Below, piece after piece: positions 1 to 50,710 of a DNA stretch of 64,000 nucleotides; position 1 is the stretch's first letter, and every line of letters begins with the position of its first letter. The DNA is from Macrostomum lignano (taxonomy: Eukaryota): NCBI GenBank assembly GCA_002269645.1, contig NIVC01000762.1:1-64000 (forward strand), written 5' to 3'. The position numbers and the translations under genes were made by a program. A model generated the notes under the pieces. That model saw only the letters and a program-made list of their open reading frames with translations, was not told where the DNA came from and made no database searches.

Positions 1-3000
1 AGCGACGGCGAGCCGTCTGCTGACGACGGCGCTCTAGCCAAGGCAATGCAAAAGACGCATGACGCCAAGGAGAGCGGCAGAAGGCCGATCTCAGCTCCCG
101 AGGAGGCAGCAACGCGCTGAGCGACGCTTTGCGTCAAGCCTCGGAGGGACGCGCTCGACAAGAAGTGCCGCTGAGAAGGCTGGCCTCGACAAGGACGCCC
201 TTGGCGCACTGAAGCTTGCCGAAGACGTGCTGAAGCGACGCGGCGTCAAGGCTGGCGACCTGACTGAGGAAGAGCGCAAAGCGGTCGGCGACGCAGTGAA
301 CGCACTCGATGAGGTGCTTGGGTCCGACGCAAGCGGCCTAAGTGAAGAGGAGCGAGAAATGCTAGCAGCGACGCTGCAGCGGATCAAGGATCGTCCGTTG
401 GACGAGCTGACCGACGAGGACCGCGCTCAGCTGGCCAAAGCGCTGGCTCTGCTGAACAAAAAGAAGAAGAAGGCCGACAAGCAGCGAAAGGAGGGCGAGT
501 CGGCCGAGTCTCTGCGCGAGAAGGCCAGTTGAGGAGCGCCGAGAATGCGGCCGATACGCTGAAGGCACTCTCATGGCTAGCCAGCGACGGCAAGGACAAG
601 AAGCTGAACGACGACCAGGCTGATAGTCTAACGAGAGCGCCAGCGCGATGAGGAAGGTTCTCGAAGAGGACCCGGAGAGTCTTGGCCTATCCGACGCTGA
701 GGCGCGCAACGCGCTCACTGTGCTGAACGCTCTCGAGAACAAGAAGGCTGGCGACACGGTCAGTCCGGAGCAGCTTGAAGCGGCTCGGCAAGGTGGCCAA
801 GATGGTCGAGGAGGGACGCGACAAGTGCAAAAAGCCGAAGATAGCCGACAGGCTCTAACCGAGCTGGAAAAGGTCAGGCGGACAGGTGGACGCCGACACG
901 GCCAAGGACATTTGAGGCTATTGGCCAGCCAAGCGACGGCGAGCCGTCTGCTGACGACGGCGCTCTAGCCAAGGCAATGCAAAAGACGCATGACGCCAAG
1001 GAGAGCGGCAAAAGGCCGATCTCACTCCCGAGGAGCAGAACGCGCTGAGCGACGCTTTGCGTCAAGCCTCGGAGGGACCGCTCGACAAGAGTGCCGCTGA
1101 GAAGGCTGGCCTCGACAAGGACGCCCTTGGCGCACTGAAGCTTGCCGAAGACGTGCTGAAGCGACGCGGCGTCAAGGCTGGCGACCTGACTGAGGAAGAG
1201 CGCAAAGCGGTCGGCGACGCAGTGAACGCACTCGATGAGGTGCTTGGGTCCGACGCAAGCGGCCTAAGTGAAGAGGAGCGAGAAATGCTAGCAGCGACGC
1301 TGCAGCGGATCAAGGATCGTCCGTTGGACGAGCTGACCGACGAGGACCGCGCTCAGCTGGCCAAAGCGCTGGCTCTGCTGAACAAAAAGAAGAAGAAGGC
1401 CGACAAGCAGCGAAAGGAGGGCGAGTCGGCCGAGTCTCTGCGCGACGCAGTTGAGGACGCCGAGAATGCGGCCGATACGCTGAAGGCACTCTCATGGCTA
1501 GCCAGCGACGGCAAGGACAAGAAGCTGAACGACGACCAGGCTGATAGTCTAACCGAGAGCGCCAGCGCGATGAGGAAGGTTCTCGAAGAGGACCCGGAGA
1601 GTCTTGGCCTATCCGACGCTGAGGCGCGCAACGCGCTCACTGTGCTGAACGCTCTCGAGAACAAGAAGGCTGGCGACACGGTCAGTCCGGAGCAGCTTGA
1701 AGCGCTCGGCAAGGTGGCCAAGATGGTCGAGGAGGGACGCGACAAAGTGCAAAAAGCCGAAGATAGCCGACAGGCTCTAACCGAGCTGGAAAGGTCAGGC
1801 GGACAGGTGGACGCCGACACGGCCAAGGACATTTTGAGGCTATTGGCCAGCCAAGCGACGGCGAGCCGTCTGCTGACGACGGCGCTCTAGCCAAGGCAAT
1901 GCAAAAGACGCATGACGCCAAGGAGAGCGGCAAGAAGGCCGATCTCACTCCCGAGGAGCAGAACGCGCTGAGCGACGCTTTGCGTCAAGCCTCGGAGGGA
2001 CCGCTCGACAAGAGTGCCGCTGAGAAGGCTGGCCTCGACAAGGACGCCCTTGGCGCACTGAAGCTTGCCGAAGACGTGCTGAAGCGACGCGGCGTCAAGG
2101 CTGGCGACCTGACTGAGGAAGAGCGCAAAGCGGTCGGCGACGCAGTGAACGCACTCGATGAGGTGCTTGGGTCCGACGCAAGCGGCCTAAGTGAAGAGGA
2201 GCGAGAAATGCTAGCAGCGACGCTGCAGCGGATCAAGGATCGTCCGTTGGACGAGCTGACCGACGAGGACCGCGCTCAGCTGGCCAAAGCGCTGGCTCTG
2301 CTGAACAAAAAGAAGAAGAAGGCCGACAAGCAGCGAAAGGAGGGCGAGTCGGCCGAGTCTCTGCGCGACGCAGTTGAGGACGCCGAGAATGCGGCCGATA
2401 CGCTGAAGGCACTCTCATGGCTAGCCAGCGACGGCAAGGACAAGAAGCTGAACGACGACCAGGCTGATAGTCTAACCGAGAGCGCCAGCGCGATGAGGAA
2501 GGTTCTCGAAGAGGACCCGGAGAGTCTTGGCCTATCCGACGCTGAGGCGCGCAACGCGCTCACTGTGCTGAACGCTCTCGAGAACAAGAAGGCTGGCGAC
2601 ACGGTCAGTCCGGAGCAGCTTGAAGCGCTCGGCAAGGTGGCCAAGATGGTCGAGGAGGGACGCGACAAAGTGCAAAAAGCCGAAGATAGCCGACAGGCTC
2701 TAACCGAGCTGGAAAGGTCAGGCGGACAGGTGGACGCCGACACGGCCAAGGACATTTTGAGGCTATTGGCCAGCCAAGCGACGGCGAGCCGTCTGCTGAC
2801 GACGGCGCTCTAGCCAAGGCAATGCAAAAGACGCATGACGCCAAGGAGAGCGGCAAGAAGGCCGATCTCACTCCCGAGGAGCAGAACGCGCTGAGCGACG
2901 CTTTGCGTCAAGCCTCGGAGGGACCGCTCGACAAGAGTGCCGCTGAGAAGGCTGGCCTCGACAAGGACGCCCTTGGCGCACTGAAGCTTGCCGAAGACGT

Positions 3001-6000
3001 GCTGAAGCGACGCGGCGTCAAGGCTGGCGACCTGACTGAGGAAGAGCGCAAAGCGGTCGGCGACGCAGTGAACGCACTCGATGAGGTGCTTGGGTCCGAC
3101 GCAAGCGGCCTAAGTGAAGAGGAGCGAGAAATGCTAGCAGCGACGCTGCAGCGGATCAAGGATCGTCCGTTGGACGAGCTGACCGACGAGGACCGCGCTC
3201 AGCTGGCCAAAGCGCTGGCTCTGCTGAACAAAAAGAAGAAGAAGGCCGACAAGCAGCGAAAGGAGGGCGAGTCGGCCGAGTCTCTGCGCGACGCAGTTGA
3301 GGACGCCGAGAATGCGGCCGATACGCTGAAGGCACTCTCATGGCTAGCCAGCGACGGCAAGGACAAGAAGCTGAACGACGACCAGGCTGATAGTCTAACC
3401 GAGAGCGCCAGCGCGATGAGGAAGGTTCTCGAAGAGGACCCGGAGAGTCTTGGCCTATCCGACGCTGAGGCGCGCAACGCGCTCACTGTGCTGAACGCTC
3501 TCGAGAACAAGAAGGCTGGCGACACGGTCAGTCCGGAGCAGCTTGAAGCGCTCGGCAAGGTGGCCAAGATGGTCGAGGAGGGACGCGACAAAGTGCAAAA
3601 AGCCGAAGATAGCCGACAGGCTCTAACCGAGCTGGAAAGGTCAGGCGGACAGGTGGACGCCGACACGGCCAAGGACATTTTGGAGGCTATTGGCCAGCCA
3701 AGCGACGGCGAGCCGTCTGCTGACGACGGCGCTCTAGCCAAGGCAATGCAAAAGACGCATGACGCCAAGGAGAGCGGCAAGAAGGCCGATCTCACTCCCG
3801 AGGAGCAGAACGCGCTGAGCGACGCTTTGCGTCAAGCCTCGGAGGGACCGCTCGACAAGAGTGCCGCTGAGAAGGCTGGCCTCGACAAGGACGCCCTTGG
3901 CGCACTGAAGCTTGCCGAAGACGTGCTGAAGCGACGCGGCGTCAAGGCTGGCGACCTGACTGAGGAAGAGCGCAAAGCGGTCGGCGACGCAGTGAACGCA
4001 CTCGATGAGGTGCTTGGGTCCGACGCAAGCGGCCTAAGTGAAGAGGAGCGAGAAATGCTAGCAGCGACGCTGCAGCGGATCAAGGATCGTCCGTTGGACG
4101 AGCTGACCGACGAGGACCGCGCTCAGCTGGCCAAAGCGCTGGCTCTGCTGAACAAAAAGAAGAAGAAGGCCGACAAGCAGCGAAAGGAGGGCGAGTCGGC
4201 CGAGTCTCTGCGCGACGCAGTTGAGGACGCCGAGAATGCGGCCGATACGCTGAAGGCACTCTCATGGCTAGCCAGCGACGGCAAGGACAAGAAGCTGAAC
4301 GACGACCAGGCTGATAGTCTAACCGAGAGCGCCAGCGCGATGAGGAAGGTTCTCGAAGAGGACCCGGAGAGTCTTGGCCTATCCGACGCTGAGGCGCGCA
4401 ACGCGCTCACTGTGCTGAACGCTCTCGAGAACAAGAAGGCTGGCGACACGGTCAGTCCGGAGCAGCTTGAAGCGCTCGGCAAGGTGGCCAAGATGGTCGA
4501 GGAGGGACGCGACAAAGTGCAAAAAGCCGAAGATAGCCGACAGGCTCTAACCGAGCTGGAAAGGTCAGGCGGACAGGTGGACGCCGACACGGCCAAGGAC
4601 ATTTTGAGGCTATTGGCCAGCCAAGCGACGGCGAGCCGTCTGCTGACGACGGCGCTCTAGCCAAGGCAATGCAAAAGACGCATGACGCCAAGGAGAGCGG
4701 CAAGAAGGCCGATCTCACTCCCGAGGAGCAGAACGCGCTGAGCGACGCTTTGCGTCAAGCCTCGGAGGGACCGCTCGACAAGAGTGCCGCTGAGAAGGCT
4801 GGCCTCGACAAGGACGCCCTTGGCGCACTGAAGCTTGCCGAAGACGTGCTGAAGCGACGCGGCGTCAAGGCTGGCGACCTGACTGAGGAAGAGCGCAAAG
4901 CGGTCGGCGACGCAGTGAACGCACTCGATGAGGTGCTTGGGTCCGACGCAAGCGGCCTAAGTGAAGAGGAGCGAGAAATGCTAGCAGCGACGCTGCAGCG
5001 GATCAAGGATCGTCCGTTGGACGAGCTGACCGACGAGGACCGCGCTCAGCTGGCCAAAGCGCTGGCTCTGCTGAACAAAAAGAAGAAGAAGGCCGACAAG
5101 CAGCGAAAGGAGGGCGAGTCGGCCGAGTCTCTGCGCGACGCAGTTGAGGACGCCGAGAATGCGGCCGATACGCTGAAGGCACTCTCATGGCTAGCCAGCG
5201 ACGGCAAGGACAAGAAGCTGAACGACGACCAGGCTGATAGTCTAACCGAGAGCGCCAGCGCGATGAGGAAGGTTCTCGAAGAGGACCCGGAGAGTCTTGG
5301 CCTATCCGACGCTGAGGCGCGCAACGCGCTCACTGTGCTGAACGCTCTCGAGAACAAGAAGGCTGGCGACACGGTCAGTCCGGAGCAGCTTGAAGCGCTC
5401 GGCAAGGTGGCCAAGATGGTCGAGGAGGGACGCGACAAAGTGCAAAAAGCCGAAGATAGCCGACAGGCTCTAACCGAGCTGGAAAGGTCAGGCGGACAGG
5501 TGGACGCCGACACGGCCAAGGACATTTTGGAGGCTATTGGCCAGCCAAGCGACGGCGAGCCGTCTGCTGACGACGGCGCTCTAGCCAAGGCAATGCAAAA
5601 GACGCATGACGCCAAGGAGAGCGGCAAGAAGGCCGATCTCACTCCCGAGGAGCAGAACGCGCTGAGCGACGCTTTGCGTCAAGCCTCGGAGGGACCGCTC
5701 GACAAGAGTGCCGCTGAGAAGGCTGGCCTCGACAAGGACGCCCTTGGCGCACTGAAGCTTGCCGAAGACGTGCTGAAGCGACGCGGCGTCAAGGCTGGCG
5801 ACCTGACTGAGGAAGAGCGCAAAGCGGTCGGCGACGCAGTGAACGCACTCGATGAGGTGCTTGGGTCCGACGCAAGCGGCCTAAGTGAAGAGGAGCGAGA
5901 AATGCTAGCAGCGACGCTGCAGCGGATCAAGGATCGTCCGTTGGACGAGCTGACCGACGAGGACCGCGCTCAGCTGGCCAAAGCGCTGGCTCTGCTGAAC

Positions 6001-6670
6001 AAAAAGAAGAAGAAGGCCGACAAGCAGCGAAAGGAGGGCGAGTCGGCCGAGTCTCTGCGCGACGCAGTTGAGGACGCCGAGAATGCGGCCGATACGCTGA
6101 AGGCACTCTCATGGCTAGCCAGCGACGGCAAGGACAAGAAGCTGAACGACGACCAGGCTGATAGTCTAACCGAGAGCGCCAGCGCGATGAGGAAGGTTCT
6201 CGAAGAGGACCCGGAGAGTCTTGGCCTATCCGACGCTGAGGCGCGCAACGCGCTCACTGTGCTGAACGCTCTCGAGAACAAGAAGGCTGGCGACACGGTC
6301 AGTCCGGAGCAGCTTGAAGCGCTCGGCAAGGTGGCCAAGATGGTCGAGGAGGGACGCGACAAAGTGCAAAAAGCCGAAGATAGCCGACAGGCTCTAACCG
6401 AGCTGGAAAGGTCAGGCGGACAGGTGGACGCCGACACGGCCAAGGACATTTTGGAGGCTATTGGCCAGCCAAGCGACGGCGAGCCGTCTGCTGACGACGG
6501 CGCTCTAGCCAAGGCAATGCAAAAGACGCATGACGCCAAGGAGAGCGGCAAGAAAACCGATCTCACTCCCGAGGAGCAGAACGCGCTGAGCGACGCTTTG
6601 CGTCAAGCCTCGGAGGGACCGCTCGACAAGAGTGCCGCTGAGAAGGCTGGCCTCGACAAGGACGCCCTTG
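1..6670 (+). repeat. Coding tandem repeat, 924-bp unit, about 7.2 copies
   Basis: The motif AGCGACGGCGAGCCG starts at 1, 932, 1854, 2777, 3701, 4624, 5548 and 6472. Units after the first are almost identical. The array ends at GACGCCCTTG (6670). Confidence 0.97.
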
Positions 6671-9600
6671 CCCTAGAGAAATTGACCGATAATATGAAAG
6701 AATCCTTAGATGACGTTGAGGTGCATCAACTTCTAGAACGACCACCAGATAAGATGAAAGGACTCCCAGATGAGGTTGAAATCGCTTTTTCTGATGTCAA
6801 TGAATTAGACATTGTTCCATTCTTTGGTAGCACCCAGACCTCAGAGGTGATATCGTCTATGCCTGGACAAAAAACATCAGCTGGCGTTTTGAATGCAGTG
6901 TTAGACTCTGAATGTCGAGTTTCCGATAGTCTCTTAGAAGCTACTGAACAGCCGTCTAGTATTGCTACGGCAATGCCTGTGGCTAGGAGCTCTCCCGGTT
7001 TTTCGTCCACTATACCTTCTCAAGACAGTGCAAAGGTAAAGACTGTTATTGAATGTGCTACCCAGACAGAGAAGCTGGAAGTCCGCGATGAAAGTGATCA
7101 ATGGGAGGATTCGGGCCGGCTGTCTCTGTCTCTTCAAAATATTCCCGTTGAGGACAATCGTCGTATGTCGTTTGCCTCGATGCCAGACCGTGTAACTGAG
7201 ACCAGTCTCCTGGTTCCTGCGTTAGCTATTTCCGACAGTCTCGGCAGTTCACAAGAGACGCCAGCAACTGCTTCGCCGGGCTTGTTAGACCAGAGTGCCA
7301 ACAATCGCCAATCGCAGTCGTCGCGCGATATTGGTCGCCTGCCGCCCTCGCTTGGTTGCTCGGAGTCTCAACTTGTGCGTTCTCGATCGGTTGAGCAAAT
7401 TGACGCTCTGGTTGTCGGCAGGCCTGCCGAGGCTGCTTCTTCTGAGACGCAGAGGCAGCCCCGTAGAACCCGGGAGATTTCAGTGTCTACAGATGCCGAG
7501 ACAGGAACTCCACGATCAAGTCGTGGTGTTTGTGATTTCATTATGCTAGACCTGAACCGATGTCGCACTTGGGAAGAGATGATTGAAGCGCAGTTGAACT
7601 ATATTCGAGGCCAGACAGACCTGCTGCTTGAGACTGTAGACAGCTCTCCAGAGCCGACACGAGCTCCATCGCCTGAGCCTGAGCCGGAACAGCAGCGCAC
7701 GGTGGAAGTGGCGGCTTCAGTTCGCACAACCGTTCAGCAAACTCCAGCCCGTGGAAGACCGGCGGAGCCACTGACCCAGCCGAATCCACGCATCAACCAA
7801 CTGCGCATGGAAATCCGAAATCAAGAGTGGCGCACCCAGATGGAGATGTTCAAGAGAGAGAGACAGTTTGCCAACTCTCAGTTGGAGGCGACGCGCCTAC
7901 TGTCGCAATGTCAGCTGGCTGGAACGCGCTCTCCCGCAGCCGAGCCGGCTTCCGGCGCCACAAACTACGCGCGCAAACTCACAGCGGAGAGGAGCAAACT
8001 GCTGCGGCCGATTGTTGCTGAACAGACAGTCGAGCCTTCAGAGCATTCGTCAGCGGCGGCTTCAGCGACAACGACGGCGACAACAGTACCGAAAGCACCA
8101 ACGGCAGAGTCTGGGAATGCTCAGGCTGGCACTGCAGCTGGCGGTGATTATCATCGTCGGTCTCAAGAGTCGACTTCGTCGACTAGTCTAGCCGAGCAGG
8201 CCGCTGCTTCTCAAGCAGCACCGCCGCCGCCACCGCCGCCGCCGCCAATTTACCGAACGCGCCCGCCGCGTCGAACTGTGACCGCCACCGCGTCCTTTCT
8301 AGACCGATCGGGCCGCCCTGCCATCCGCACGGGGTCGGCGCTGGATGCGATCAACAGATCGGCTCGGATATCTCAGGTGGGCCACTTTCCTTGAACTGCC
8401 TCTGCTATTATCACTGTGTTATTCAGCTACTTTAAAAATCACCACTCCGCTTGTACGCAGCTGCATCTAAATGGCTTGCTTTGAGGCAACAAGACACAAT
8501 AGGTGTACACGCATTGATCTAATTGCTTCTTTTATGCCAGCTCCTCAGAGTGAAAAGAAATATGGTGACTGGTGATAAAAGTTTTTCTTTTAACCGCGAA
8601 TTCAATTTACAGGGAGTTTCAATCCTATGAATCTAGTAGAATAAATGTCAGTTCACACTACTATTGTTATAAAAGCTTAAATAGTAGTATCAATGACCTA
8701 CTTATGAGTGCTGTAATTTCTGAAAATTTGTGTGGCTACTTGTAGTTCATTTTAGCCAGAATTAGGCCTTCATATAAATCTAAAAAAGGTGACATTTACG
8801 TCCTGATACTAGCCTGCATTTGAATAATTGCTTGGTCATGCTTCGGCTTTGAGTACGCTAAATTGTCTAGTTGGACACGTTAAAACAAATGCTTGGCATT
8901 TTGCTACTATGTTTAATTGCTTAAAATTTGATTTTTAATCTCGTAAGATTGTCGCGGCGGCTCTCGTGACGGCCAACAGAAGTGCAGCAGAGCTGCCGAG
9001 TGTAAGTCTCCGCCTGATAGATGAACTTCTCTGGAGCTTTTACTAACCTAAAAGTTGTGATCAAAAGAAATCAGATGTCCTGTTGATGCCGCTGTGATTT
9101 GTGCTATTCATACAGTTTGCCAATAGCTTTAACGTCATCGTATCTACTGTACTGTACAATTCCTTGACTTTACTAACCAGTAGTGAGTTAGTAACATATT
9201 AACTAGTTGAAGTAGTCGCAATTTACCGATTTGCCGTTCTGTGTAAGAACTGTTTTACGTCACTGTTTTTCATTTGCTTGGATTTTTTAACTATCGTAGT
9301 TGCATGCTATCTAAATACGTATATTTTTTGCCCTACATCGTCACTATTATAGTTTAGAGTTTACTTCTATACCTTTTCATAGTGAGGTGGATGCTGTAGG
9401 GGTAGAAAGTTGGGGTGGGTGCAGTTGGGGTAGAAAATCATAGGGTATGGGGTGATGGGGTGGGTGCAGTAGGGGTAGAAAATCATAGGGAATGGGGTGA
9501 TGGGGTGGGTGCAGTTAGGGTAGAAAGTCACAGAGTATGAGGTAATGGGGGTGGGTGCAGTTGGGGTAGAAAATCACAGGGTATGGGGTGATGGGGTGGG

Positions 9601-10055
9601 TGCAGTAGGGGTAGAAAATCATAGGGTATGGGGTGATGGGGTGGGTGCAGTAGGGGTTGAAAATCACAGGGCGTGGTGGGTGAAGGACAAGGAATTAAAA
9701 AGCTTTTTCAGAAAAAATTGATAAGTAATGCTATGTGATCTTGAATTCCATCTGGTGCAGGCAGTGGACGAGAATCTCCGTCAGCACAGGCAGCGTTACA
9801 GGCAGCTGCAGGTTACAAGCGACAGATCAAGAGGTGTGGAGCCAGCTAGCAGGTGAGAATGCTTAAACTATTGTCGCTATAAACTACATTAATTACGACC
9901 TCATTACCAAAGAGCCTGTGTCCCCTTCAAAAATCCCGGTTTGCAGCGCATCGGCCGACTTGGACATGCTGCGGCAGACTCGTGCTAACCTGGAAGAAGC
10001 TCGCGCGGGTCTCAACAGCCTTATGAGCAGCCCGCGGTCTCAGGGAGAGCTTTAG
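1..10055 (+). CDS. Giant tandem-repeat protein, 5'-partial: at least 7 x 308-aa helical repeats + unique Ser/Pro-rich tail; exons <1-8376, 8948-9001, 9761-9852, 9947-10055
   Basis: ORF 4669-8394 reads through two repeats into unique sequence. Donor CAG|GTGGGC at 8376. Three small downstream exons have AG/GT ends and compatible phases (0,0,2), giving ...SARISQ|IVAAALVTANRSAAELPS|AVDENLRQHRQRYRQLQ...EPAS|SASADLDMLRQTRANLEEARAGL...QGEL*. AATAAA follows at 10160. The reading frame is broken by 1-bp deletions at about 1836, 2759 and 4606, and by several indels in the first kb. Confidence 0.8.
9398..9680 (+). repeat. G-rich minisatellite (about 39-40 bp) in intron
   Basis: Repeating GGGGTGGGTGCAG...GGGGTAGAAAATCATAGGG. 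Confidence 0.9.
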
Positions 10056-10165: not shown

Positions 10166-11261
10166 CAATCGGTGTGGTTATTGCTTCGTTGATTTTTAGT
10201 TGACCAAAGAGGGGGGTTTGGTCAAGCCAAATAAAGGCAGCAGTCGTGGGGTTTACAGTAAGTATAAAGTGTACGATGTATGAGGTATTGGAGGGATAGG
10301 AAAATCAGTGCCGAGAGGTCGATGTCGGAGGGGTAGGAAAGTCAATGGCGTGAGGTGGGTGTCGGAGGGATAGGAAAGTCAGTGGCGTGATGTGGGTGTC
10401 GGTGGGGTGAGAAGTTGATTGTGCGAATTTTAGGTTTTAATACAATTATGTAACTGTTTTCTTTAATTTGTGCTGACTATAGTTTGACAACGAAGTACTT
10501 ATCGGAAATTTTAAAAACCTATTTTTGAGCAAAAATCATTATCCAAATCATATTGGACGTAGCTTTGGTGCTAACATTATTAGCAATGCTTTCTTAAGTT
10601 TTGTTGAATTGCTGTGAATTTATCGCATAGCTTAGTTCGGCGTGTGCTATGCAGTTTTCCTTATCTGTACTTGTCTAATTGTCTGATTGTCGAATTCTCT
10701 ATTGTCCAATTTAATTACAAACTGCTTTCTTGCGTTGACAGCCCTTGTTTTGCTCAATAACTGCATCATGTTTCAACAGCTCTGGTTTAGCTGTCATTGT
10801 TTGTAATGCATTGTAGTTTTTTCTATTGTATCCTCATTAACAAGACTGTTACTTATTAGCACTCAGTTAATCTGCATGGCCAGATCCACTTCTAGGGGCC
10901 AAGCTATTTTTGAGTTTTTATTTCTCATTGATTGACACTTAGCCGCGTAGGGATGGATTATGTACCAAATGTACATAATAGCTTTTAGCTTTTAACTTTT
11001 AGCAGCACAACAACTTGGACATGTAAATTAATTCCATTTTTATTTGAGCTGGACTCACCTGCGGTAATTTTTCGAGCTCGTATGTAATCTTGATGCCCGA
11101 GACAGTAAAACGCTATTTTTTATAATTGCTCAAAGCATCGCTTCCATGTATGTTTAGTAGGTTTTTGCTACTGAAAACTATAATATTAAACTATCTTGTT
11201 TTTATAATATCGATTGACTACAAACTATTATTCACGTGTAACTGATACAATTATAAAGAAA

Positions 11262-11850
11262 GTGGGGTGGGTGTCTTTAGGGTAGGAAAATAACAGGGAG
11301 TGGGGTGGGTGTTTTTCGGGTAGGAAATAACAGGGAGTGGGGTGGGTGTCTTACGGGTAGGAAATAACAGGGAGTGGGGTGGGTGTTTTTCGGGTAGGAA
11401 ATAACAGGGAGTGGGGTGGGTGTCTTACGGGTAGGAAATAACATGGAGTGGGGTGGGTGTCTTTCGGGTAGGAAATAACAGGGAGTGGGGTGGGTGTTTT
11501 TCGGGTAGGAAATAGCAGGGAGTGGGGTGGGTGTCTTACGGGTAGGAAATAACAGGGAGTGGGGTGGGTGTTTTTCGGGTAGGAAATAACAGGGAGTGGG
11601 GTGGGTGTCTTACGGGTAGGATATAACAGGGAGTGGGGTGGGTGTTTTTCGGGTAGGAAATAACAGGGAGTGGGGTGGGTGTCTTACGGGTAGGAAATAA
11701 CAGGGAGTAGGGTGGAGTGTCCTTGGGGTAGGGAGTAACAGGGAGTGGGGTGGAGTGTCCTTGGGGTAGGGAGTAACAGGGAGTGGGGTGGAGTGTCCTT
11801 GGGTTAGGAAATAACAGAGAGTGGGTGGGTGTCTTCAGGGTAGGGGAGTA
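11262..11850 (+). repeat. G-rich 37-bp minisatellite, same family as 9398-9680 and a degenerate patch at about 10285-10415
   Basis: Unit AACAGGGAGTGGGGTGGGTGTTTTTCGGGTAGGAAAT with four G-tracts. Confidence 0.92.
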
Positions 11851-19353: not shown

Positions 19354-30231
<10,878 letters not shown>

Positions 30232-30249
30232 CTGGTAAGAAGATGCTAC

Positions 30250-32435
30250 GTGTCTGATGCTACGGGTCTGAGATGCTACGGGTCTGAGATGCTACGGGTC
30301 TGAGATGCTACGGGTCTGAGATGCTACGGGTCTGAGATGCTACGGGTCTGAGATGCTACGGGTCTGAGATGCTACGGGTCTGAGATGCTACGGGTCTGAG
30401 ATGCTACGGGTCTGAGATGCTACGGGTCTGAGATGCTACGGGTCTGAGATGCTACGGGTCTGAGATGCTACGGGTCTGAGATGCTACGGGTCTGAGATGC
30501 TACGGGTCTGAGATGCTACGGGTCTGAGATGCTACGGGTCTGAGATGCTACGGGTCTGAGATGCTACGGGTCTGAGATGCTACGGGTCTGAGATGCTACG
30601 GGTCTGAGATGCTACGGGTCTGAGATGCTACGGGTCTGAGATGCTACGGGTCTGAGATGCTACGGGTCTGAGATGCTACGGGTCTGAGATGCTACGGGTC
30701 TGAGATGCTACGGGTCTGAGATGCTACGGGTCTGAGATGCTACGGGTCTGAGATGCTACGGGTCTGAGATGCTACGGGTCTGAGATGCTACGGGTCTGAG
30801 ATGCTACGGGTCTGAGATGCTACGGGTCTGAGATGCTACAGATCTGAGATGCTACGGGTCTGAGATGCTACGGGTCTGAGATGCTACGGGTCTGAGATGC
30901 TACGGGTCTGAGATGCTACGGGTCTGAGATGCTACGGGTCTGAGATGCTACGGGTCTGAGATGCTACGGGTCTGAGATGCTACGGGTCTGAGATGCTACG
31001 GGTCTGAGATGCTACGGGTCTGAGATGCTACGGGTCTGAGATGCTACGGGTCTGAGATGCTACGGGTCTGAGATGCTACGGGTCTGAGATGCTACGGGTC
31101 TGAGATGCTACGGGTCTGAGATGCTACGGGTCTGAGATGCTACGGGTCTGAGATGCTACGGGTCTGAGATGCTACGGGTCTGAGATGCTACGGGTCTGAG
31201 ATGCTACGGGTCTGAGATGCTACGGGTCTGAGATGCTACGGGTCTGAGATGCTACGGGTCTGAGATGCTACGGGTCTGAGATGCTACGGGTCTGAGATGC
31301 TACGGGTCTGAGATGCTACGGGTCTGAGATGCTACGGGTCTGAGATGCTACGGGTCTGAGATGCTACGGGTCTGAGATGCTACGGGTCTGAGATGCTACG
31401 GGTCTGAGATGCTACGGGTCTGAGATGCTACAGATCTGAGATGCTACGGGTCTGAGATGCTACGGGTCTGAGATGCTACGGGTCTGAGATGCTACGGGTC
31501 TGAGATGCTACGGGTCTGAGATGCTACGGGTCTGAGATGCTACGGGTCTGAGATGCTACGGGTCTGAGATGCTACGGGTCTGAGATGCTACGGGTCTGAG
31601 ATGCTACGGGTCTGAGATGCTACGGGTCTGAGATGCTACGGGTCTGAGATGCTACGGGTCTGAGATGCTACGGGTCTGAGATGCTACGGGTCTGAGATGC
31701 TACGGGTCTGAGATGCTACGGGTCTGAGATGCTACGGGTCTGAGATGCTACGGGTCTGAGATGCTACGGGTCTGAGATGCTATGGGTCTGAGATGCTACG
31801 GGTCTGAGATGCTACGGGTGGGTCTGAGATGCTACGGGTCTGAGATGCTACGGTTCTGAGATGCTACGGGTCTGAGATGCTACAGATCTGAGATGCTACG
31901 GGTCTGAGATGCTACGGGTCTGAGATGCTACGGGTTTGAGATGCTACGGGTCTGAGATGCTACGGGTCTGAGATGCTACGGGTCTGAGATGCTACAGGTC
32001 TGAGATACTACGGGTCTGAGATGCTGCGGGTCTGAGATGCTACGGGTCTGAGATGCTACGGGTCTGAGATGCTACGGGTCTGAGATGCTACGGGTCTGAG
32101 ATGCTACGGGTCTGAGATGCTACGGGTCTGAGATGCTACGGGTCTGAGATGCTACGGGTCTGAGATGCTACCGGTCTGAGATGCTACGGGTCTGAGATGC
32201 TACGGGTCTGAGATGCTACGGGTCTGAGATGCTACGGGTCTGAGATGCTACGGGTCTGAGATGCTACGGGTCTGAGATGCTACAGGTCTGAGATGCTACG
32301 GGTCTGAGATGCTACGGGTCTGAGATGCTACGGGTCTGAGATGCTACGGGTCTGAGATGCTACGGGTCTGAGATGCTACGGGTCTGAGATGCTACGGGTC
32401 TCTGAGATGCTACGGGTCTGAGATGCTGCGGGTCT
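30250..32435. repeat. 16-bp satellite, about 136 near-perfect copies
   Basis: Unit TGAGATGCTACGGGTC. Confidence 0.97.
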
Positions 32436-34189
32436 GCTGCAGGTCTGGTACCAAGGGTTTTTGTTATACGGCTGGTTGCTTCTAAATCTAAAGCTTAATC
32501 TGGGTGAATTTTCAGCCTAGTACAGCAGGAGTATACAACACAGAAGACGACTTTGAAACAGAGCGCGCTTCAGGCAAGCCTGAAAGAAGCTTTAAAAATA
32601 GAGAAGTTCCTGCAAGTTGCTGCATAAATATAGAAAAAAATGGTTGACTGCAGACGCGCTGTGGTGGGGAGGTTAGAGGAGTGTCTGTCAGGAACATTGC
32701 TACCGCAGGGAGAGAGGGGAATATACAATAGCGCAATGCGCGCAGAGTTGAAAAGCCATCAGCCATTGGCTCCGGATGGACAGGGGTTGATGATCGATGG
32801 TTAAGCATGAGGAGTAGCAGATACCTGCAGCATCATGCATAATGCTTTTAATATTAGGATTTCTAATTGTTTGCTGCCTGAATTCTCCCATTACTGCATA
32901 TGGGCTAGGAGAGGAGAAATGGAGTCGCGTACAAGTATGCTTCCATGCAGAGAGAATTGATGTGAAGAGTCAAGAGTGTGTCAGAAAACATGTGTACATG
33001 TATTGCAAACGTGGGGGGGGGAATTAATGCATATAGAAATTCCGTGTTCACCAATATGAACCAATATGCGAAATACACTACATGGTATGAATATGTATCG
33101 TTAGAAAATGCTGCATTGGATTTGAATCCACTGATTTGGCATGCATAAATGATGTGACACCCTGTTGTAACATGTAACATGTAACATACATATAATGTAT
33201 CTGATGATTGATGAAGTTTAGCTTAATGCTATATGTGCATGCATAATGGCCCAAAGTCCCAGTGGCGAAGGCAGGCCCGGGGAGCGGGTAAATCGATCGC
33301 CGACCACAAAATTCACTCCTCCAAAACTCTCAAGTCTCAATTGACTGGAACAAAACCTAAGAGACAGAAGCGCCACCAAAATAAGGGGCGCCCACCAACA
33401 AAATTAGATTTTTTTATTATCAGCTCATTAAAATTATTCTTCATTTAGATTCAACCGGGACCACGGTAGGAATAAATGGTTTCAGGTCAAACCTCGTAGA
33501 CAAGATGATCGTAATGCCAAAATGGAATTCAAAAGTGTTGCCGCAAAACAGCTACTGTTACGACTTACGAGTAAACTAAGCAAAACTTAAAATAATCATT
33601 CTACGCAAGGACGGCTTAAGTATTTTTAAGTAATACAAATAAAACTGCGAGCATCAATTTCGCTAGCGGCTTGCTTTTGTAAAGCACTAAACAAAAGAAA
33701 ACACATTTATTGTTTTCTCAGTCGTTTCTTTAGAAAGTTGTACAAAATTAACATGGAAAAAACATTTTCTTAAGATAAGTTTTTTTTAAAACAATGGCTT
33801 TATTTCCCTGATTTCTCTTTTCAATAACTCAAATTACTTTTGATGAAAATTTATGATTCGTTCGATGATTAAACTTAAAAGCCGGCTCTCTCCCTAACTA
33901 TAATGAAATAGATTGCCAGTACTTATGAGTTTTCGTTTCATACTTCATCTAAAACATTTGTAATAGACACTTCATTGCTCTCATTACTGCACGCCATAAT
34001 TACTGCTTTAGCATTGTTATTAGTATCAAGAAGTCCCTTCTTTATTTTGATTGACAATTTCTTGGGCCTATTTCTAGACTAAACCTTTACACTTACAGCA
34101 CTAGCTATAGCTTTGTAGTTGTTAGTTACTTTTAAAGTAGAAATTAGCTTAGCTTTTGCGCAGTATATTCATTAGCAAATGGCCTGATT

Positions 34190-37100: not shown

Positions 37101-40100
37101 CGCACTCTTTGCTGAATCGTATGTATGGATTTTCTATCGTTAATTATTATTCCCACAGTCGTTCTTTTCTTCACTGTGCACCTCAGAAGTACACTGTGCA
37201 TCTCAGAAGTACACTGTGCATCTCAGAAGTACACTGTGCATCTCAGAAGTACACTGTGCATCTCAGAAGTACACTGTGCACCTCAGAAGTACACTGTGCA
37301 TCTCAGAAGTACACTGTGCATCTCAGAAGTACACTGTGCATCTCAGAAGTACACTGTGCATCTCAGAAGTACACTGTGCATCTCAGAAGTACACTGTGCA
37401 TCTCAGAAGTACATTGTGCATCTCAGAAGTACACTGTGCATCTCAGAAGTACACTGTGCATCTCAGAAGTACATTGTGCATCTCAGAAGTACGCTGTGCA
37501 TCTCAGAAGTACGCTGTGCATCTCAGAAGTACATTGTGCATCTCAGAAGTACACTGTGCATCTCAGAAGTACATTGCACACCCCAGAAGTACATTGCACA
37601 ATGCACACCTCAGAAGTACATTGTACAATGCACACCTCAGAAGTACATTAAACACCCCCGAACCCGCCGCAGTTGAAGATCCTGGTACCCAACAGCACAG
37701 CTGGCATGATCATCGGGAAGAAGGGCGCATTCATCAAGGAGATCATGGACTCCAGCGGTGCCTACGTGCAGATCTCGCAGAAGCCGAAAGAGCAGGCCCT
37801 GTCGGAGCGCTGCGTCACTGTGGCAGGCGATCCCGATCAGAACCGTGCCGCGGCCGCCATGATCCTGGCCAAGATCGCCGAGGACCCACAGTCGGCCAGC
37901 TGTCCGAACATCAGCTATTCGAACATCACAGGCCCGGTGGCCAGTGCCTACCCTACTGGCAGTCCGTACGCGCTCGTCCAGGGCGGCAGCGGCCTCGGCA
38001 GCGCGGCCTCCTCTCCACAGGGAGCCAGCGGAGGCAGCGGCTTCGACCTGCAGCTGGGCGTTGGAGGCGGCAGCGGTGGTGGGGCGCCGCTCAGTCTGAA
38101 CTCGTCTCAGAACTCGGCCTGCTCGTTCGGTTCGGCCGGTTCCATCTCGCTGGACACTCTGCGAGCCTCGCTGAGGCAGAGTGGATATTCAGACTCAGCG
38201 GCTGAGGATATTATTAGCGCTATGCTCACGCTGGCTAGTTATGGCTTCTTCAATCTGCAGTCACTGGGAGCGCAGACTCCTCAGGCTGCTCCGCCAGCAC
38301 CTCCGCCGCCGCCTCCTCCGCAGGCCATCATCTCTCCTGGACCTCCGGGCGGCGGCGGCGCTGGCGGAGGCGCCATGTCGCTGTTGCAGTCGCCTCACTC
38401 GTCCTTCAACTTGTCGCACGGCTCGCTGTCGGCTCTGATGCCGCTGTCTGCCGATCCTTCCGCAGCCGCTGCAGCAGCCGCCGCCGCCGCGGCCGCCGCT
38501 GGCGCAGATTTCGGCGTCGGAGCGCCGTTTGGCGGCGGCGCCGCGGGTGGTCTGCCGGGCGGGGACGCCTTCGTTTATTCCGCCAATGCGGGCTGCCGCC
38601 GCCCGTTACTGTCGTGTCCTCGACTGCTGCTGGCGGCGGCCAGGCGTGGGACTCGACAGCCCAGTGCAAGCGCGACCTTGAGATTCCCGAAGCCCTAGTC
38701 GGGGTTATCATCGGACCCGGTGGGAAGGATATCGCGGAGCTGCAGAGCACCACTCAGACTAATATTCAAGTGAGTTGGCTGCTGCAACATACGGGAATCT
38801 AGTGGGTGAGATTCTGGAATCTAGTGGGTGAGATTCTGGCATCAAGTGGATGAGATTCTGGATTCTAGTGGGTGAGATTCTGGCATCAAGTGGGTGAGAT
38901 TCTGGCATCAAGTGGGTTAGATTCTGGAATCTAGTGGGTGAGATTCTGGAATCTAGGGGTGAGATTCTGGAATCTAGGGGTGAGATTCTGGAATCTAGTG
39001 GGTGAGATTCTCGAATCTAGTGGGTGAGATTCTCGAATCTAATGGGTGAGATTCTGGAATCTAGGGGTGAGATTCTGGAATCCAGTGAGTGAAATTCTGG
39101 AATCAAGTGGTTGAGATTCTGAAATCTAATGGGTGAGATTCTGAGATGTAGAGGGTGAGATTCTGAAATCTAGTAGGTGAGATTCTGGAATCTAGTGGGT
39201 GAGATTCTGGAATAAAGTGGGTGAGATTCTGGAATCTAGTGGGTGAGATTCTGGAATCTAGTGGGTGAGATTCTGGAATCTAGGGGTGAGATTCTGGAAT
39301 CTAGGGGTGGAATTCTGGAATCTAGTGGGTGAGATTCTCGAATCTAATGGGTGAGATTCTCGAATCCAGTGAGTGAAATTCTGGAATCAAGTGGTTGAGA
39401 TTCTGAAATCTAATGGGTGAGATTCTGGCATCAAGTGGGTGAGATTCTGAGATGTAGAGGGTGAGATTCTGAAATCTAGTAGGTGAGATTCTGGAATCTA
39501 GGGGTGAGATTCTGGAATCTAGTGGGTGAGATTCTCGAATCTAATGGGTGAGATTCTGGAATCCAGTGAGTGAGATTCTGGAATAAAGTGGGTGAGATTC
39601 TGGAATAAAATGGTTGAGATTCTGGCATCAAGTGGGTGAGATTCTGGCATCAAATGGGTGAGATTCTGGCATCAAGTGGGTTAGATTCTGGAATCAAATG
39701 GGTGAGATTCTGGCATCAAGTGGGTGAGATTCTGAGATGTAGAGGGTGAGATTCTGGAATCTAGTAGGTGAGGGTCTGGAATCTAGTGGGTGAGATTCTG
39801 GAATCTAGTGGGTGAGATTCTGGAATAAAGTGGGTGAGATTCTGGATTCTAGTGGGTGAGATTCTGGCATCAAGTGGGTGAGATTCTGGCATCAAATGGG
39901 TGAGATTCTGGCATCAAGTGGGTTAGATTCTGGAATCAAATGGGTGAGATTCTGGCATCAAGTGGGTGAGATTCTGAGATGTAGAGGGTGAGATTCTGGA
40001 ATCTAGTAGGTGAGGGTCTGGAATCTAGTGGGTGAGATTCTGGAATCTAGTGGGTGAGATTCTGGCATCAAGTGGGTGAGATTCTGAGATGTAGAGGGTG

Positions 40101-40562
40101 AGATTCTGGAATCTAGTAGGTGAGGGTCTGGAATCTAGTGGGTGAGATTCTGGAATCTAATGGGTAAGATTCTGAGATCCAGTGGGTGCAATTCTGTATT
40201 TCTAAACTCAGAAGAGACTAGATTCTAAGATCTAGTAGACTGGAGATCTAGGGGGTGAGATGTTAGGTTCTCGAGTTCCTGTTCACGTCAACTCCAAGCC
40301 AAGATGGCGCGCACTAGCTCTGAGCCGTGGGAGAACAGCGCGAGTAGCCCTTGAATCCCATTTCCCATTCGCTCAGGTGTCCAAGCGCGGCGATTATCAG
40401 TCGCACACTCGCAATCGAGTTGTAACGATTAGCGGCTCCCAGGCCAGTGTGCTCAAAGCTGAGCGGATTATCCAGCAGCGGGTGCGGCAGGAGGACCAGC
40501 GCCGGCAGCATCCCAGCGGCAGCGGTAGCGGAGGCGGACCGACCTCGCCGAACCAGCTGTGA
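34190..40562 (+). CDS. nova: Nova/pasilla family 3-KH-domain splicing regulator; exons 34190-34232, 35987-36127, 36934-37082, 37673-38769, 40377-40562
   Basis: KH1 [18 protein letters not shown]...YPG|TTER, KH2 [18 protein letters not shown] and KH3 [16 protein letters not shown]...Q|VSKRGDY...[10 protein letters not shown] all match the Nova signature. Splice phases are compatible. A frameshift at about 38590 separates KH2 from KH3. The first exon is less certain. Confidence 0.9.
36200..36895. repeat. 23-bp minisatellite, about 30 copies, nova intron 2
   Basis: Unit ATCTGGGATTTGAATCCAATGGG with internal palindrome GGATT-TG-AATCC. Confidence 0.95.
37175..37640. repeat. 20-bp minisatellite, nova intron 3
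   Basis: Unit GCATCTCAGAAGTACACTGT. Confidence 0.95.
38795..40200. repeat. 22-bp minisatellite, about 60 copies, nova intron 4
   Basis: Unit GAGATTCTGGAATCTAGTGGGT with palindrome GATTC-TG-GAATC. Confidence 0.95.
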
Positions 40563-46379: not shown

Positions 46380-47740
46380 AAGGACAGGAGAGGGTAGGAC
46401 GGGAGAGGAAGGACAGGGCAGGATAGGAAGGACAGGACAGGATAGGAAGGAAATGATAGGAAGGACAGGATAGGGTAGGACAGGAGAGAGGAGAGGGAAG
46501 GACAGGAGAGGCAAGGAGAGGATAGGACAGGAGAGGGAAGGACAGGAGAGGATAGGACAGGAGAGGGTAGGACAGGATAGAAAGGACAGGAGAGGGAAGG
46601 ACAGGAGAGGATAGGACAGGAGAGGGTAGGACAGGATAGAAAGGACAGGAGAGGGAAGGACAGGAGAGGATAGGACAGGAGAGGGTAGGACAGGATAGAA
46701 AGGACAGGAGAGGGAAGGACAGGAGAGGATAGGACAGGAGAGGGAAGGACAGGAGAGGATAGGAGAGGATAGGACAGGAGAGGGAAGGACAGGAGAGGAT
46801 AGGACAGGAGAGGGTAGGACAGGATAGAAAGGACAGGAGAGGGAAGGACAGGAGAGGATAGGACAGGAGAGGGTAGGACAGGAGAGAGGAGAGGGAAGGA
46901 CAGGAGAGGCAAGGAGAGGATAGGACAGGAGAGGGAAGGACAGGAGAGGATAGGACAGGAGAGGGTAGGACAGGATAGAAAGGACAGGAGAGGGAAGGAC
47001 AGGAGAGGATAGGACAGGAGAGGGTAGGACAGGATAGAAAGGACAGGAGAGGGAAGGACAGGAGAGGATAGGACAGGAGAGGGTAGGACAGGATAGAAAG
47101 GACAGGAGAGGGAAGGACAGGAGAGGATAGGACAGGAGAGGGTAGGACAGGATAGAAAGGACAGGAGAGGGAAGGACAGGAGAGGATAGGACAGGAGAGG
47201 GAAGGACAGGAGAGGATAGGACAGGAGAGGGTAGGACAGGATAGAAAGGACAGGAGAGGGAAGGACAGGAGAGGATAGGACAGGAGAGGGTAGGACAGGA
47301 TAGAAAGGACAGGAGAGGGAAGGACAGGAGAGGATAGGACAGGAGAGGGTAGGACAGGATAGAAAGGACAGGAGAGTATAGGACAGGAGAGGGTAGGACA
47401 GGATAGAAAGGACAGGAGAGGGAAGGACAGGAGAGGATAGGACAGGAGAGGGTAGGACAGGATAGAAAGGACAGGAGAGGGAAGGACAGGATAGAAAGGA
47501 CAGGAGAGGGAAGGACAGGATAGGAAGGACAGGAGAGGGTAGGACAGGATAGAAAGGACAGGATAGGGAGGACAGGAGAGGGTAGGACAGGAGAGGGAAG
47601 GACAGTATAGGAAGGACAGGATAGGAAGGACAGGAGAGGGTAGGACAGGATAGAAAGGACAGGAGAGGGAAGGACAGTATAGGAAGGACAGGATAGGGAA
47701 GGACAGGAGAGGGTAGGACAGGATAGGAAGGACAGAAGAG
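46380..47740. repeat. Purine-rich pentamer-based array (GGACA/GGAGA/GGGAA/GGATA)
   Basis: Almost pyrimidine-free plus strand, about 1.36 kb. Confidence 0.95.
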
Positions 47741-48072
47741 GGTAGTAAGTACAGTGAGCTTAGTGCGAGAGACACCACAGATCTGTACTTTTTAATGCGA
47801 TGTCCTGGCGTCCTGCCTTAGCACACTTAAGCCGTTACGCGTACAATCGAGTGAAAATATAATTTAAACGCCAAGAAATGTTCGGATCGGAAGTATATTT
47901 TTTTCTTTTTTCTTTCCATTTAACACGGATATGAAGGATGAAGATAAAATGTTTATAAAAATGAAACACACTGGCTATAACAAAACACAGAAGAAAATGA
48001 TAAGTTTTTTTGGGGAAATTGCACTGGGTGAGTTCTAAAGGAGTTGCCAGAATTGGGGAATTAAACTGAGGA

Positions 48073-50710
48073 TTAGCGAGTTCTATTGTGAATTCGTTGA
48101 TGAGACCTCAGGTTGGACCGGTCAGTGAAGCACCTGCCGCACTGTCTGCACTCGAATGGTTTTTCACCTGCGGGAATTGTAATAGAGATGCGGTAACTGA
48201 AGATTGATGTTACCCCTGGTAGATTAGCGGTGTGAGAGGGAGTGAGCCTGAGGAGATAAGGAGAGCGAGAGAGGGAGAGGGGACAGGGAGGAGAGTGAGA
48301 ACTGAGGAGACAGGGAGAGTGAAAGGGAGTGAGAAGGAGACAGGGAGAGTGAAAGGGAGTGAGAAGGAGACAGGGAGAGTGAAAGGGAGTGAGAAGGAGA
48401 CAGGGGGAGTGAAAGGGAGTGAGAAGGAGACAGGGAGAGTGAAAGAAATATAGTGAGGGTGAGATGCAGACAGTGAAAGTGAGAGGAATACAGGGGAAGT
48501 GATAGTGAGAGGGAGATAGGGAGGGTGAGAGGTAGACAGTGAGAGTAAGATGGAGACAGGGTCAGGGAGAGTGAGAGGGAGAGTGACAAGGAGAGTGGGA
48601 GGGAGAGTGAGAGGGAGATTGGGTCAGGGAGAGTGAGAGGGAGAGTGAGAGGGTGATTGGGTCAGGGAGAGTGGGAGGGAGAGTGACAAGGAGAGTGGGA
48701 GGGAGAGTGAGAGGGAGATTGGGTCAGGGAGAGTGAGAGGGAGAGTGAGAGGGTGATTGGGTCAGGGAGAGTGAGAGGGAGAGTGAGAGGGAGAGTGAGA
48801 GGGAGAGTGAGAGGGAGAGTGAGAGGGAGATTGGGTCAGGGAGAGTGAGAGGGAGACAGGGTCAGGAAGAGTGAGAGGGAGAGTGAGAGGGAGATTGGGT
48901 CAGGGAGAGTGAGAGGGAGAGTGGGAGGGAGAGTGAGAGGGAGATTGGGTCAGGGAGAGTGAGAGGGAGATTGGGTCAGGGAGAGTGAGAGGGAGATTGG
49001 GTCAGGGAGAGTGAGAGGGAGAGTGAGAGGGAGATTGGGTCAGGGAGAGTGAGAGGGAGATTGGGTCAGGGAGAGTGAGAGGGAGAGTGAGAGGGAGATT
49101 GGGTCAGGGAGAGTGAGAGGGAGACAGGGTCAGTGAGAGTGAGAGGGAGAGTGAGAGGGAGATTGGGTCAGGGAGAGTGAGAGGGAGACAGGGTCAGGGA
49201 GAGTGAGAGGGAGAGTAAGAGGGAGATTGGGTCAGTGAGAGTGAGAGGGAGACAGGGTCAGGGAGAGTGAGAGGGAGAGTGAGAGGGAGATTGGGTCAGT
49301 GAGAGTGAGAGGGAGACAGGGTCAGGGAGAGTGAGAGGGAGAGTGAGAGGGAGATTGGGTCAGGGAGAGTGAGAGGGAGACAGGGTCAGGGAGAGTGAGA
49401 GGGAGAGTGAGAGGGAGATTGGGTCAGGGAGAGTGAGAGGGAGACAGGGTCAGGGAGAGTGAGAGGGAGAGTGAGAGTGAGATTGGGTCAGGGAGAGTGA
49501 GAGGGAGAGTGGGAGGGAGAGTGAGAGGGAGATTGGGTCAGGGAGAGTGAGAGGGAGGGTGAGAGGGAGATTGGGTCAGGGAGAGTGAGAGGGAGACAGG
49601 GTCAGTGAGAGTGAGAGGGAGAGTGAGAGGGAGATTGGGTAAGGGAGAGTGAGAGGGAGACAGGGTCAGGGAGAGTGAGAGGGAGATTGGGTCAGGGAGA
49701 GTGAGAGGGAGACAGGGTCAGGGAGAGTGAGAGGGAGAGTGAGAGGGAGAGTGGGAGGGAGAGTGAGAGGGAGATTGGGTCAGGGAGAGTGAGAGGGAGA
49801 CAGGGTCAGTGAGAGTGAGAGGGAGAGTGACAGGGAGAGTGGGAGGGAGAGTGAGAGGGAGATTGGGTCAGGGAGAGTGAGAGGGAGAGTGAGAGGGAGA
49901 TTGGGTCAGGGAGAGTGAGAGGGAGACAGGGTCAGTGAGAGTGAGAGGGAGAGTGAGAGGGAGATTGGGTCAGGGAGAGTGAGAGGGAGAGTGAGAGGGA
50001 GATTGGGTCAGGGAGAGTGAGAGGGAGAGTGAGAGGGAGATTGGGTCAGGGAGAGTGAGAGGGAGAGTGAGAGGGAGATTGGGTCAGGGAGAGTGAGAGG
50101 GAGAGTGAGAGGGAGATTGGGTCAGGGAGAGTGGGAGGGAGAGTGGGAGGGAGAGTGGGAGGCAAATTGTGAAGCAGTAAGCTTGCAACCAATGCACAAG
50201 ATCCTATCCGCAATCTGGCTGCTAGCACAGTCACCTGTGTGGCTCCTCATGTGCCCATTGAGCAGCCAGGGCCGACTAAATCTCTTGTCGCAGATGCGGC
50301 ACTGATGCTGCAGGCTGTGCGTGAGCAGGTGCATCGATAGGGCCGGCATGGACACGTACAGCTTGCCGCAGTGCTGGCAGCTTTTAGCCAGATCGCTGTC
50401 GAATTTCCTGTGCGTCTGACTGTGCCGTCTGAGATTGCTGACGGTGGAGAAGTGCCTGCCGCACTGCTGACACGGATGGCGGCGGGTCTTCAGCGCGGGA
50501 TCCCGGTTCTCTGCCGATTGGTGCGCCTCGGTCTCGGATTTCTTTCGAAGTCGACTGGGTGGGGCGTGGGGAGGATTGACAGAAATTTGATCGATGCTTA
50601 TAAACGCTTATGATTCAATTTGGCGCCCAAGACACTTAAACTTAAACACAGGCTTTTCGGCGCCCTAAGACACAAGCTTGTTGTTGTTGGCGCCCTAAAA
50701 CACAGGCTAG

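Follow-up and report, generated by a model that had tools for sequence, protein, structure and literature searches.

What kind of protein is encoded by the long tandem repeat with which contig NIVC01000762.1 of the flatworm Macrostomum lignano begins, and to which gene does it belong? We analysed the first 64 kb of this contig (288,637 bp; assembly GCA_002269645.1), hereafter the window, in which a first-pass annotation made from the sequence alone had noticed a giant protein built of near-identical modules; the flatworm origin supposed there was correct. Taken as a whole, the explanation that we favour, with a confidence somewhat above even, is that window 1-10055 represents the 3' part of a single very large M. 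lignano protein-coding gene, whose product would be a giant intracellular protein of modular build, serving as a scaffold or motor tail and homogenised by concerted evolution. At the centre of this gene lies an array of near-identical modules of 308-313 amino acids (aa), which are strongly acidic, devoid of Cys and predicted to be all-helical.

The array extended over window 1-6669 (about 2,220 codons) on the + strand, as do all features of the gene described below, with a period of 923/924 nucleotides (nt) and units starting at positions 46, 977, 1899, 2822, 3746, 4669, 5593 and 6517. It comprised seven full units and two partial ones, so that the "at least seven" modules of the first-pass annotation were counted, a number that is a lower bound since contig NIVC01000762.1 begins inside the array. 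Comparison with the consensus unit, represented by unit 6 (4669-5592; 924 nt, 308 aa), showed that unit 4 (2822-3745; 924 nt) was intact and equal to the consensus, and that unit 7 (5593-6516; 924 nt) was likewise intact. Single-nucleotide deletions were found in unit 2 (977-1898; 922 nt, at 1011/1012 and 1835/1836), unit 3 (1899-2821; 923 nt, at 2758/2759) and unit 5 (3746-4668; 923 nt, at 4605/4606). Apart from these four deletions, units 2 to 7 were identical at every base, with zero substitutions. Unit 1 (46-976; 931 nt) was error-rich: it departed from the consensus at 15 places, of which 14 were indels, and exhibited the remnant of a 15-nt insertion encoding AEKAA. The array was bordered by the tail of a preceding unit, clipped by the contig start (1-45) and matching the final 45 nt of the consensus exactly, and by a partial unit 8 (6517-6669), which retained the first 51 residues with one substitution (A14T) and was followed by unique sequence.

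The composition of the consensus unit agreed in every respect with what had been claimed for it: 308 residues, rich in A (49), L (39), E (36), D (35) and K (33), with no Cys, one Trp and a KKKKK run. Its isoelectric point was 4.6 and its net charge -23. All seven quoted sub-motifs were present. Six of them per unit corresponded to the strict pattern [LV][TSN].[ED][EDQ], against 0.41 expected, a number reached in none of 2000 shuffled sequences; the seventh, LSDAE, fell outside this pattern. The spacing of the sub-motifs was irregular (55, 26, 23, 64 and 52 residues), with a weak periodicity of about 22 residues along the unit. Exchangeable apolipoprotein or late embryogenesis abundant (LEA) 11/22-mer repeats were considered and rejected, as no PF01442 or LEA match was obtained in Pfam (E up to 1) and the motifs are irregularly spaced.

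Structure prediction with AlphaFold gave an all-helical model of the unit with about ten helices, with a predicted local distance difference test (pLDDT) score of 70 from one sequence and of 78 from a three-sequence alignment. Helices started at residues 18, 73, 99, 122, 186, 214 and 238 in both models, each two residues after the Leu of a sub-motif (16, 71, 97, 120, 184, 212 and 236). Seven of the about ten helices thus open with a conserved capping box, L-[S/T]-x-[E/D]-[E/D]. The coincidence of all seven motifs with predicted helix starts is what would be expected from the proposal that S/T-x-x-E forms a helix N-cap. The seven capped helices also resembled one another beyond the motif, with a score of 100 versus -180 ± 50 at random positions (0 of 5000 as high) and a common pattern L-S/T-x-E-E-x3-L-x3-L-x2-L. 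This mutual similarity fits the idea that an older short helical repeat was re-amplified as part of the larger unit; however, a shared structural constraint explains it equally well.

The unit could not be attributed to a recognisable family, in accordance with the first-pass annotation: Pfam, NCBIfam, PDB sequence searches and Foldseek were all negative. In Pfam, only sub-threshold or summed motif matches were obtained with the multi-unit open reading frame (ORF), the single unit, its homologue and a diverged unit (both described below), the C-terminal region and the upstream exons. NCBIfam returned nothing meaningful, and PDB sequence searches, with a single sequence or a profile, gave nothing below E 0.04. 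When the two predicted structures were compared with the PDB by Foldseek, only generic helical bundles were retrieved (best E 0.48 and 0.79, template modelling score ≤ 0.34), the top non-significant matches being vinculin/alpha-catenin, spectrin and HEPN helical bundles. Membership in the spectrin repeats or the vinculin/alpha-catenin bundles was thus rejected, as these matches were non-significant and Pfam gave none; given the moderate confidence of the models (pLDDT 70-78), a distant kinship to helical-bundle families would still be possible. Among the Pfam models, DUF5053 (PF16476) alone exceeded its gathering score when the multi-unit protein was searched, and it is also precomputed for the GenBank protein. 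Its 33.1 bits were the sum of three partial matches, all to one LTPEEQ helix of about 31 residues (profile positions 30-61 of 71). The single unit scored 19.3 bits versus a gathering score of 26.6, over profile positions 31-61 of 71 only, and neither the homologue nor the diverged unit gave a match. The likeness to DUF5053 is at the level of a motif and not of membership. No Rfam match was found over the whole window.

On the 3' side, the exon carrying the array continued into a unique C-terminal region (6670-8376), which ended at a GT donor at 8377. This S/T/P/R-rich region of about 650 aa after the array, also rich in A, contained a run of nine Pro and a short stretch predicted to be coiled-coil-like, and no Pfam domain. 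When the annotated protein was mapped onto the window, this region was followed by intron 1 (8377-8947; GT..AG), a coding exon of 18 aa (8948-9001), intron 2 (9002-9760; GTAAGT..CAG), a further coding exon (9761-9852), intron 3 (9853-9946; 94 nt, GTGAGA..TTGCAG) and the last coding exon (9947-10055), with the stop codon at 10053-10055. The proposed absence of introns was therefore correct for the array and its exon, but not for the gene, which has three of them downstream. With one big exon to 8376 followed by three canonical introns, the gene at window 1-10055 is a genuine, spliced, eukaryotic gene. Tandem repeats of 45 nt and 37 nt, all G-rich on the + strand, were observed at 9411-9671 (a 45-nt repeat, inside intron 2) and, just past the stop codon, at 10290-10406 and 11261-11844.

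The corresponding GenBank model is the hypothetical protein BOX15_Mlig008056g1 (PAA77137.1, 1320 aa), with a coding sequence (CDS) at window 4669-10055. It begins at unit 6, right after the last frame break of the array, and covers only the final ORF piece and the downstream exons. The published M. lignano annotation is transcript-based (PMC5730564). If the explanation favoured here holds, this model represents only part of a much larger gene. No mention of Mlig008056, Mlig011902, PAA77137 or A0A267FVN1 was found in the literature and supplements searched. The sequence is public but uncharacterised. To speak of an undescribed system, as had been done, overstates the case for a single gene of restricted lineage that GenBank already lists as a hypothetical protein.

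The array had been described as a single uninterrupted frame of more than 2,200 aa, which did not hold in the assembled sequence: the 1-nt deletions and the indels of unit 1 split it into ORFs at 1057-1890, 1899-2813, 2822-4660 and 4669-8394 (277, 304, 612 and 1241 aa, respectively). One and the same deletion (TTTTGGAGG to TTTTGAGG) occurred at 1835/1836, 2758/2759 and 4605/4606, the fourth, at 1011/1012, being different. The deletions sit in short homopolymer contexts, and the array ends of both this contig and a second one, NIVC01000561.1, were dense with random indels. The M. lignano assembly was built with Canu on PacBio reads and polished with short reads by Pilon (PMC5730564), a step that fails in the array because reads cannot be uniquely placed among identical 924-nt units. 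Considering this together with the indels at the contig ends, the complete absence of substitutions and the conservation of the frame in a homologue from another genome, we regard it as likely that the frame breaks are uncorrected errors of the long-read consensus.

The deletions could instead be real: in one subgenome of this neopolyploid species, a frameshifted unit variant would have spread across the array, and this copy would be a decaying pseudogene. The recurrence of an identical deletion in three of six otherwise identical units would fit such a history, as would an annotation that takes only the ORF after the last frameshift. Decay, however, would bring substitutions, and there are none among units 2 to 7; the homologue keeps an intact frame downstream of the deletion site; and both the homopolymer context of the deletions, in an assembly where Pilon cannot place short reads (PMC5730564), and the dense indels at both contig ends speak against it. 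The frameshifted 304-aa ORF, looked up by exact match in other assemblies, had no counterpart on record. We consider a pseudogene improbable.

To search for relatives, one unit was compared by an exhaustive HMMER scan with 1.84 billion cluster representatives, in which exactly two clusters were found: its own and MEE4247509.1. The latter is a protein of 343 aa, labelled in GenBank as belonging to a "Kangiellaceae bacterium" metagenome-assembled genome (MAG; JGI 3300040801, Ga0450804_0071181). Its contig measures 1,032 nt and its two ends overlap exactly over 117 nt, which means that it is a collapsed, perfectly tandem repeat of 915 nt (305 aa). Once rotated into register, the homologue was 47% identical to the M. 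lignano unit from end to end, with few gaps, and all seven sub-motifs were conserved in position.

This homologue bears on the coding status of the array. Only one of the six frames was open across two intact units, and the homologous frame was the sole open one in the homologue. Between the two sequences, the proportion of nonsynonymous differences (pN 0.38) was about half that of synonymous differences (pS 0.75, saturated). Satellite DNA with a chance ORF was therefore rejected, a single open frame being conserved across species.

The GenBank label would also be compatible with a bacterial family, from which the flatworm would have received the unit by horizontal transfer, or with contamination of the contig, and the GC content of the array (62% versus about 46% in the surrounding DNA) points in the same direction. 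Against this, the MAG contig consists of the collapsed repeat without any flanking bacterial gene, and scans of 185,579 prokaryotic species genomes (two scans, with a pattern positive control run) revealed no relative of the unit, nor did the other cluster representatives. The gene in the window has three spliceosomal introns and lies on a 288-kb, minisatellite-rich eukaryotic contig. Coastal brackish mats are taken to be a habitat of meiofaunal flatworms. It is from such a mat, in a brackish microbial-mat co-assembly from the Etang de Berre, France, that the homologue contig originates (PMC8605020). A bacterial origin is hardly credible on these grounds, and MEE4247509.1 most likely represents flatworm DNA that was binned with a bacterial MAG by mistake.

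Other searches gave weaker negatives. Two metagenome scans gave no relative, in a collection that evidently does not include the sample holding the homologue contig. A word-indexed protein search with the 1241-aa ORF found only itself, a weak negative for a query rich in K, E and A. The word-indexed search with a unit profile retrieved MEE4247509.1 and the M. lignano fragment BOX15_Mlig011902g2 but missed the 100%-identical PAA77137.1, so that its negatives are weak. As judged from these sequences, the unit family is lineage-restricted. Within each genome its units are uniform, whereas those of different genomes have diverged, a pattern characteristic of concerted evolution. Unequal crossing-over and gene conversion would keep up the array, alongside purifying selection at the protein level.

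What precedes the array was sought on a second contig. The first-pass annotation had suggested extending the contig in the 5' direction to find the N-terminus and any signal peptide. The profile search identified BOX15_Mlig011902g2 (169 aa), a fragment sharing 95% identity with the unit, on contig NIVC01000561.1, which also ends inside an array; its reversed start, whose coordinates are hereafter given as L003, corresponds to the 5' side of the array. No signal peptide was visible at its candidate start (L003 4500). The units on L003 measured about 936-939 nt and differed from those of the window by a 15-nt insertion (AEKAA), a few substitutions and many 1-nt deletions. In the alignment, the remnant of the same insertion was recognised in window unit 1, which suggests that the two contigs break off in the same array or, the genome being neopolyploid, in equivalent ones. 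The array in the window would then continue onto L003, with degenerate, older units leading in: the first of these, partial and degenerate, occupied about 8413-8631, and a complete, diverged unit followed (8794-9693).

On L003, the array was preceded by about 1,300 codons of uninterrupted coding sequence, which GenBank assigns to the last exon of a 2505-aa kinesin + FHA protein. The ORFs before and into the array (4500-7868, 7745-8464 and 8485-9765) left no space for intergenic sequence. The stop of the first (7866-7868) was exactly that of the annotated 2505-aa CDS, for which Kinesin, Microtub_bd and FHA domains are precomputed in Pfam. Two frame switches, both in homopolymer-rich sequence, lie between the kinesin stop and the array. 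They could also be bridged by introns of 56 nt (L003 7827-7882) and 83 nt (L003 8361-8443; GTAAGA..CAG). A further candidate intron, at L003 8429-8505 with a GTGAGT donor, was rejected, since it would remove a stretch homologous to the unit. Either these two introns or two 1-nt assembly errors would carry the kinesin CDS on into the array, and the GenBank kinesin model is probably truncated. A word-indexed protein search with the conceptual protein of the kinesin tail and linker retrieved nothing, not even the annotated protein, and is a weak negative. The simplest reading of these frames is that the array continues the kinesin/FHA coding sequence and would form the giant tail of a kinesin-3-type protein; we judge the chances of this link about even.

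The same region could be read as the beginning of a separate giant intracellular gene, starting at the ATG of L003 4500 and perhaps trans-spliced with a spliced leader from a polycistronic precursor, the join to the kinesin then being an artefact of an uncut transcription unit. The ATG follows a pyrimidine-rich acceptor at a distance of 5 nt and has in-frame stops immediately before it. Over 4.4 kb of DNA, non-coding and rich in repeats, separate this exon from anything further upstream. About 7% of the assembled M. lignano transcripts are multi-gene precursors (PMC5730564). On the other side, the annotated 2505-aa CDS with Kinesin and FHA domains ends at the very stop of this ORF, which requires an in-frame splice into it, whereas an unprocessed precursor would carry stops. 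A separate gene seems doubtful to us on balance.

Several observations weigh against the explanation as a whole. M. lignano is neopolyploid, and the adjacency of the two contigs is only suggested, by the insertion variant shared with window unit 1. The kinesin link, for its part, is interrupted by the two frame switches and derives from the annotated CDS coordinates, the Pfam list and the continuity of the ORFs, the motor exons lying beyond the sequence that was read. The exon at L003 4500 opens with its ATG so close to a good acceptor (tcctcag) that a separate trans-spliced gene would look alike. The deletion common to three units could be a real frameshifted variant that truncates the protein or marks a pseudogene. 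Finally, the proposed function is drawn from composition and context alone.

The first-pass annotation had also leaned towards an adhesive-type protein. M. lignano makes very large repetitive adhesive proteins, and the large tandem-repeat architecture and the lysine run of the array could be those of a secreted structural protein, filament or glue. The unit, however, contains neither Cys nor any carbohydrate- or protein-binding domain of Pfam, carries a net charge of -23, and follows sequence annotated as part of a cytoplasmic motor. The N-terminus at the candidate start is not hydrophobic and shows no signal peptide. The adhesive reading was abandoned as very improbable. Membership among the secreted flatworm adhesives was rejected on the same grounds, the lack of Cys and of such domains in the unit and the non-hydrophobic candidate start; the true N-terminus lies outside the window.

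Returning to the favoured explanation of an intracellular scaffold or motor tail, the protein would be cytoplasmic, or at least intracellular, as suggested by the absence of Cys, the lack of secretory features at the candidate start and the context of a cytoplasmic motor. Most likely, the array would serve as an extended spacer or tether, multivalent and of negative charge, borne either by the tail of a kinesin-3-type motor or by a separate cytoskeleton-associated scaffold encoded just downstream of it. If the contigs abut and the kinesin belongs to the gene, the product would exceed about 8,000 aa.

Proteins of this general kind have precedents. In the Leishmania K39/LcKin antigen, the kinesin motor precedes a long run of acidic/basic repeats, nearly identical to one another, helix-forming and encoded in a single exon; the K39 unit is 39 aa long and predicted to form a coiled coil. 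The M. lignano array shares with it a long series of helix-forming repeats in one exon, the number of which is hard to assemble. It differs in its unit of 308-313 aa with about ten predicted helices and loops, in the absence of sequence similarity, in its occurrence in a different kingdom, and in that the link to a motor is, here, only inferred. With spectrin, vinculin/alpha-catenin and the talin rod, it has in common all-alpha, Ala/Leu-rich modules arranged in series as long cytoskeletal linkers; its unit is, however, about as long as three spectrin repeats and is identical at the DNA level, whereas the repeats of those proteins diverged anciently. It also resembles other giant, concertedly evolving repeat proteins, in which a large coding unit is homogenised within a species, diverges between species and breaks assemblies; unlike these in general, its unit sequence and predicted fold belong to no described family. 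The module is without a described family; a giant helical repeat scaffold, perhaps a kinesin tail, is already known as a kind of protein.

Minisatellites dominated the rest of the window, from 12000 to 64000, in dozens of arrays whose periods ranged from 4 to 63 nt; the array at 30241-32436, for example, comprised 137 copies of 16 nt, and that at 38794-40196 comprised 64 copies of 22 nt. The extreme GC and AT skew at 46380-47745 and 48305-50162 was accounted for by arrays consisting of purines only. A 685-aa ORF at 22818-24875 (+ strand) matched Cornifin/SPRR in Pfam (E 2e-20) and coincided with a 24-nt x 77 repeat (22876-24720); it is probably a translated minisatellite and not a gene. An ORF at 37673-38698 (+ strand) contained a clear KH_1 RNA-binding domain (E 5e-17) and is probably an exon of a separate gene.

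The array offers a clear example of concerted evolution in a coding unit of about 0.9 kb, identical within a genome and 47% identical between genomes, and the GenBank "Kangiellaceae" MAG protein is probably animal DNA. If the favoured explanation is true, the unit would define a domain family with no relatives in Pfam, in the PDB or among 1.84 billion representatives, with the exception of one environmental fragment, and would be the large, perfectly homogenised building block of a protein that may rank among the largest known to be associated with motors. Transgenesis and RNA interference exist for M. lignano, so that the function is directly testable. The fullest form of the explanation would be a kinesin-3-type motor of more than 8,000 residues, whose tail comprises at least 15 acidic, helical-bundle modules of 308 aa that evolve in concert and belong to an undescribed fold family, which also occurs as a tandem array in at least one other, probably macrostomid, species; we put this forward tentatively, as a possibility that falls short of an even chance. 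Such a motor would carry a new type of giant modular tail, which may serve as a long-range tether or as a multivalent scaffold for cargo or the cytoskeleton.

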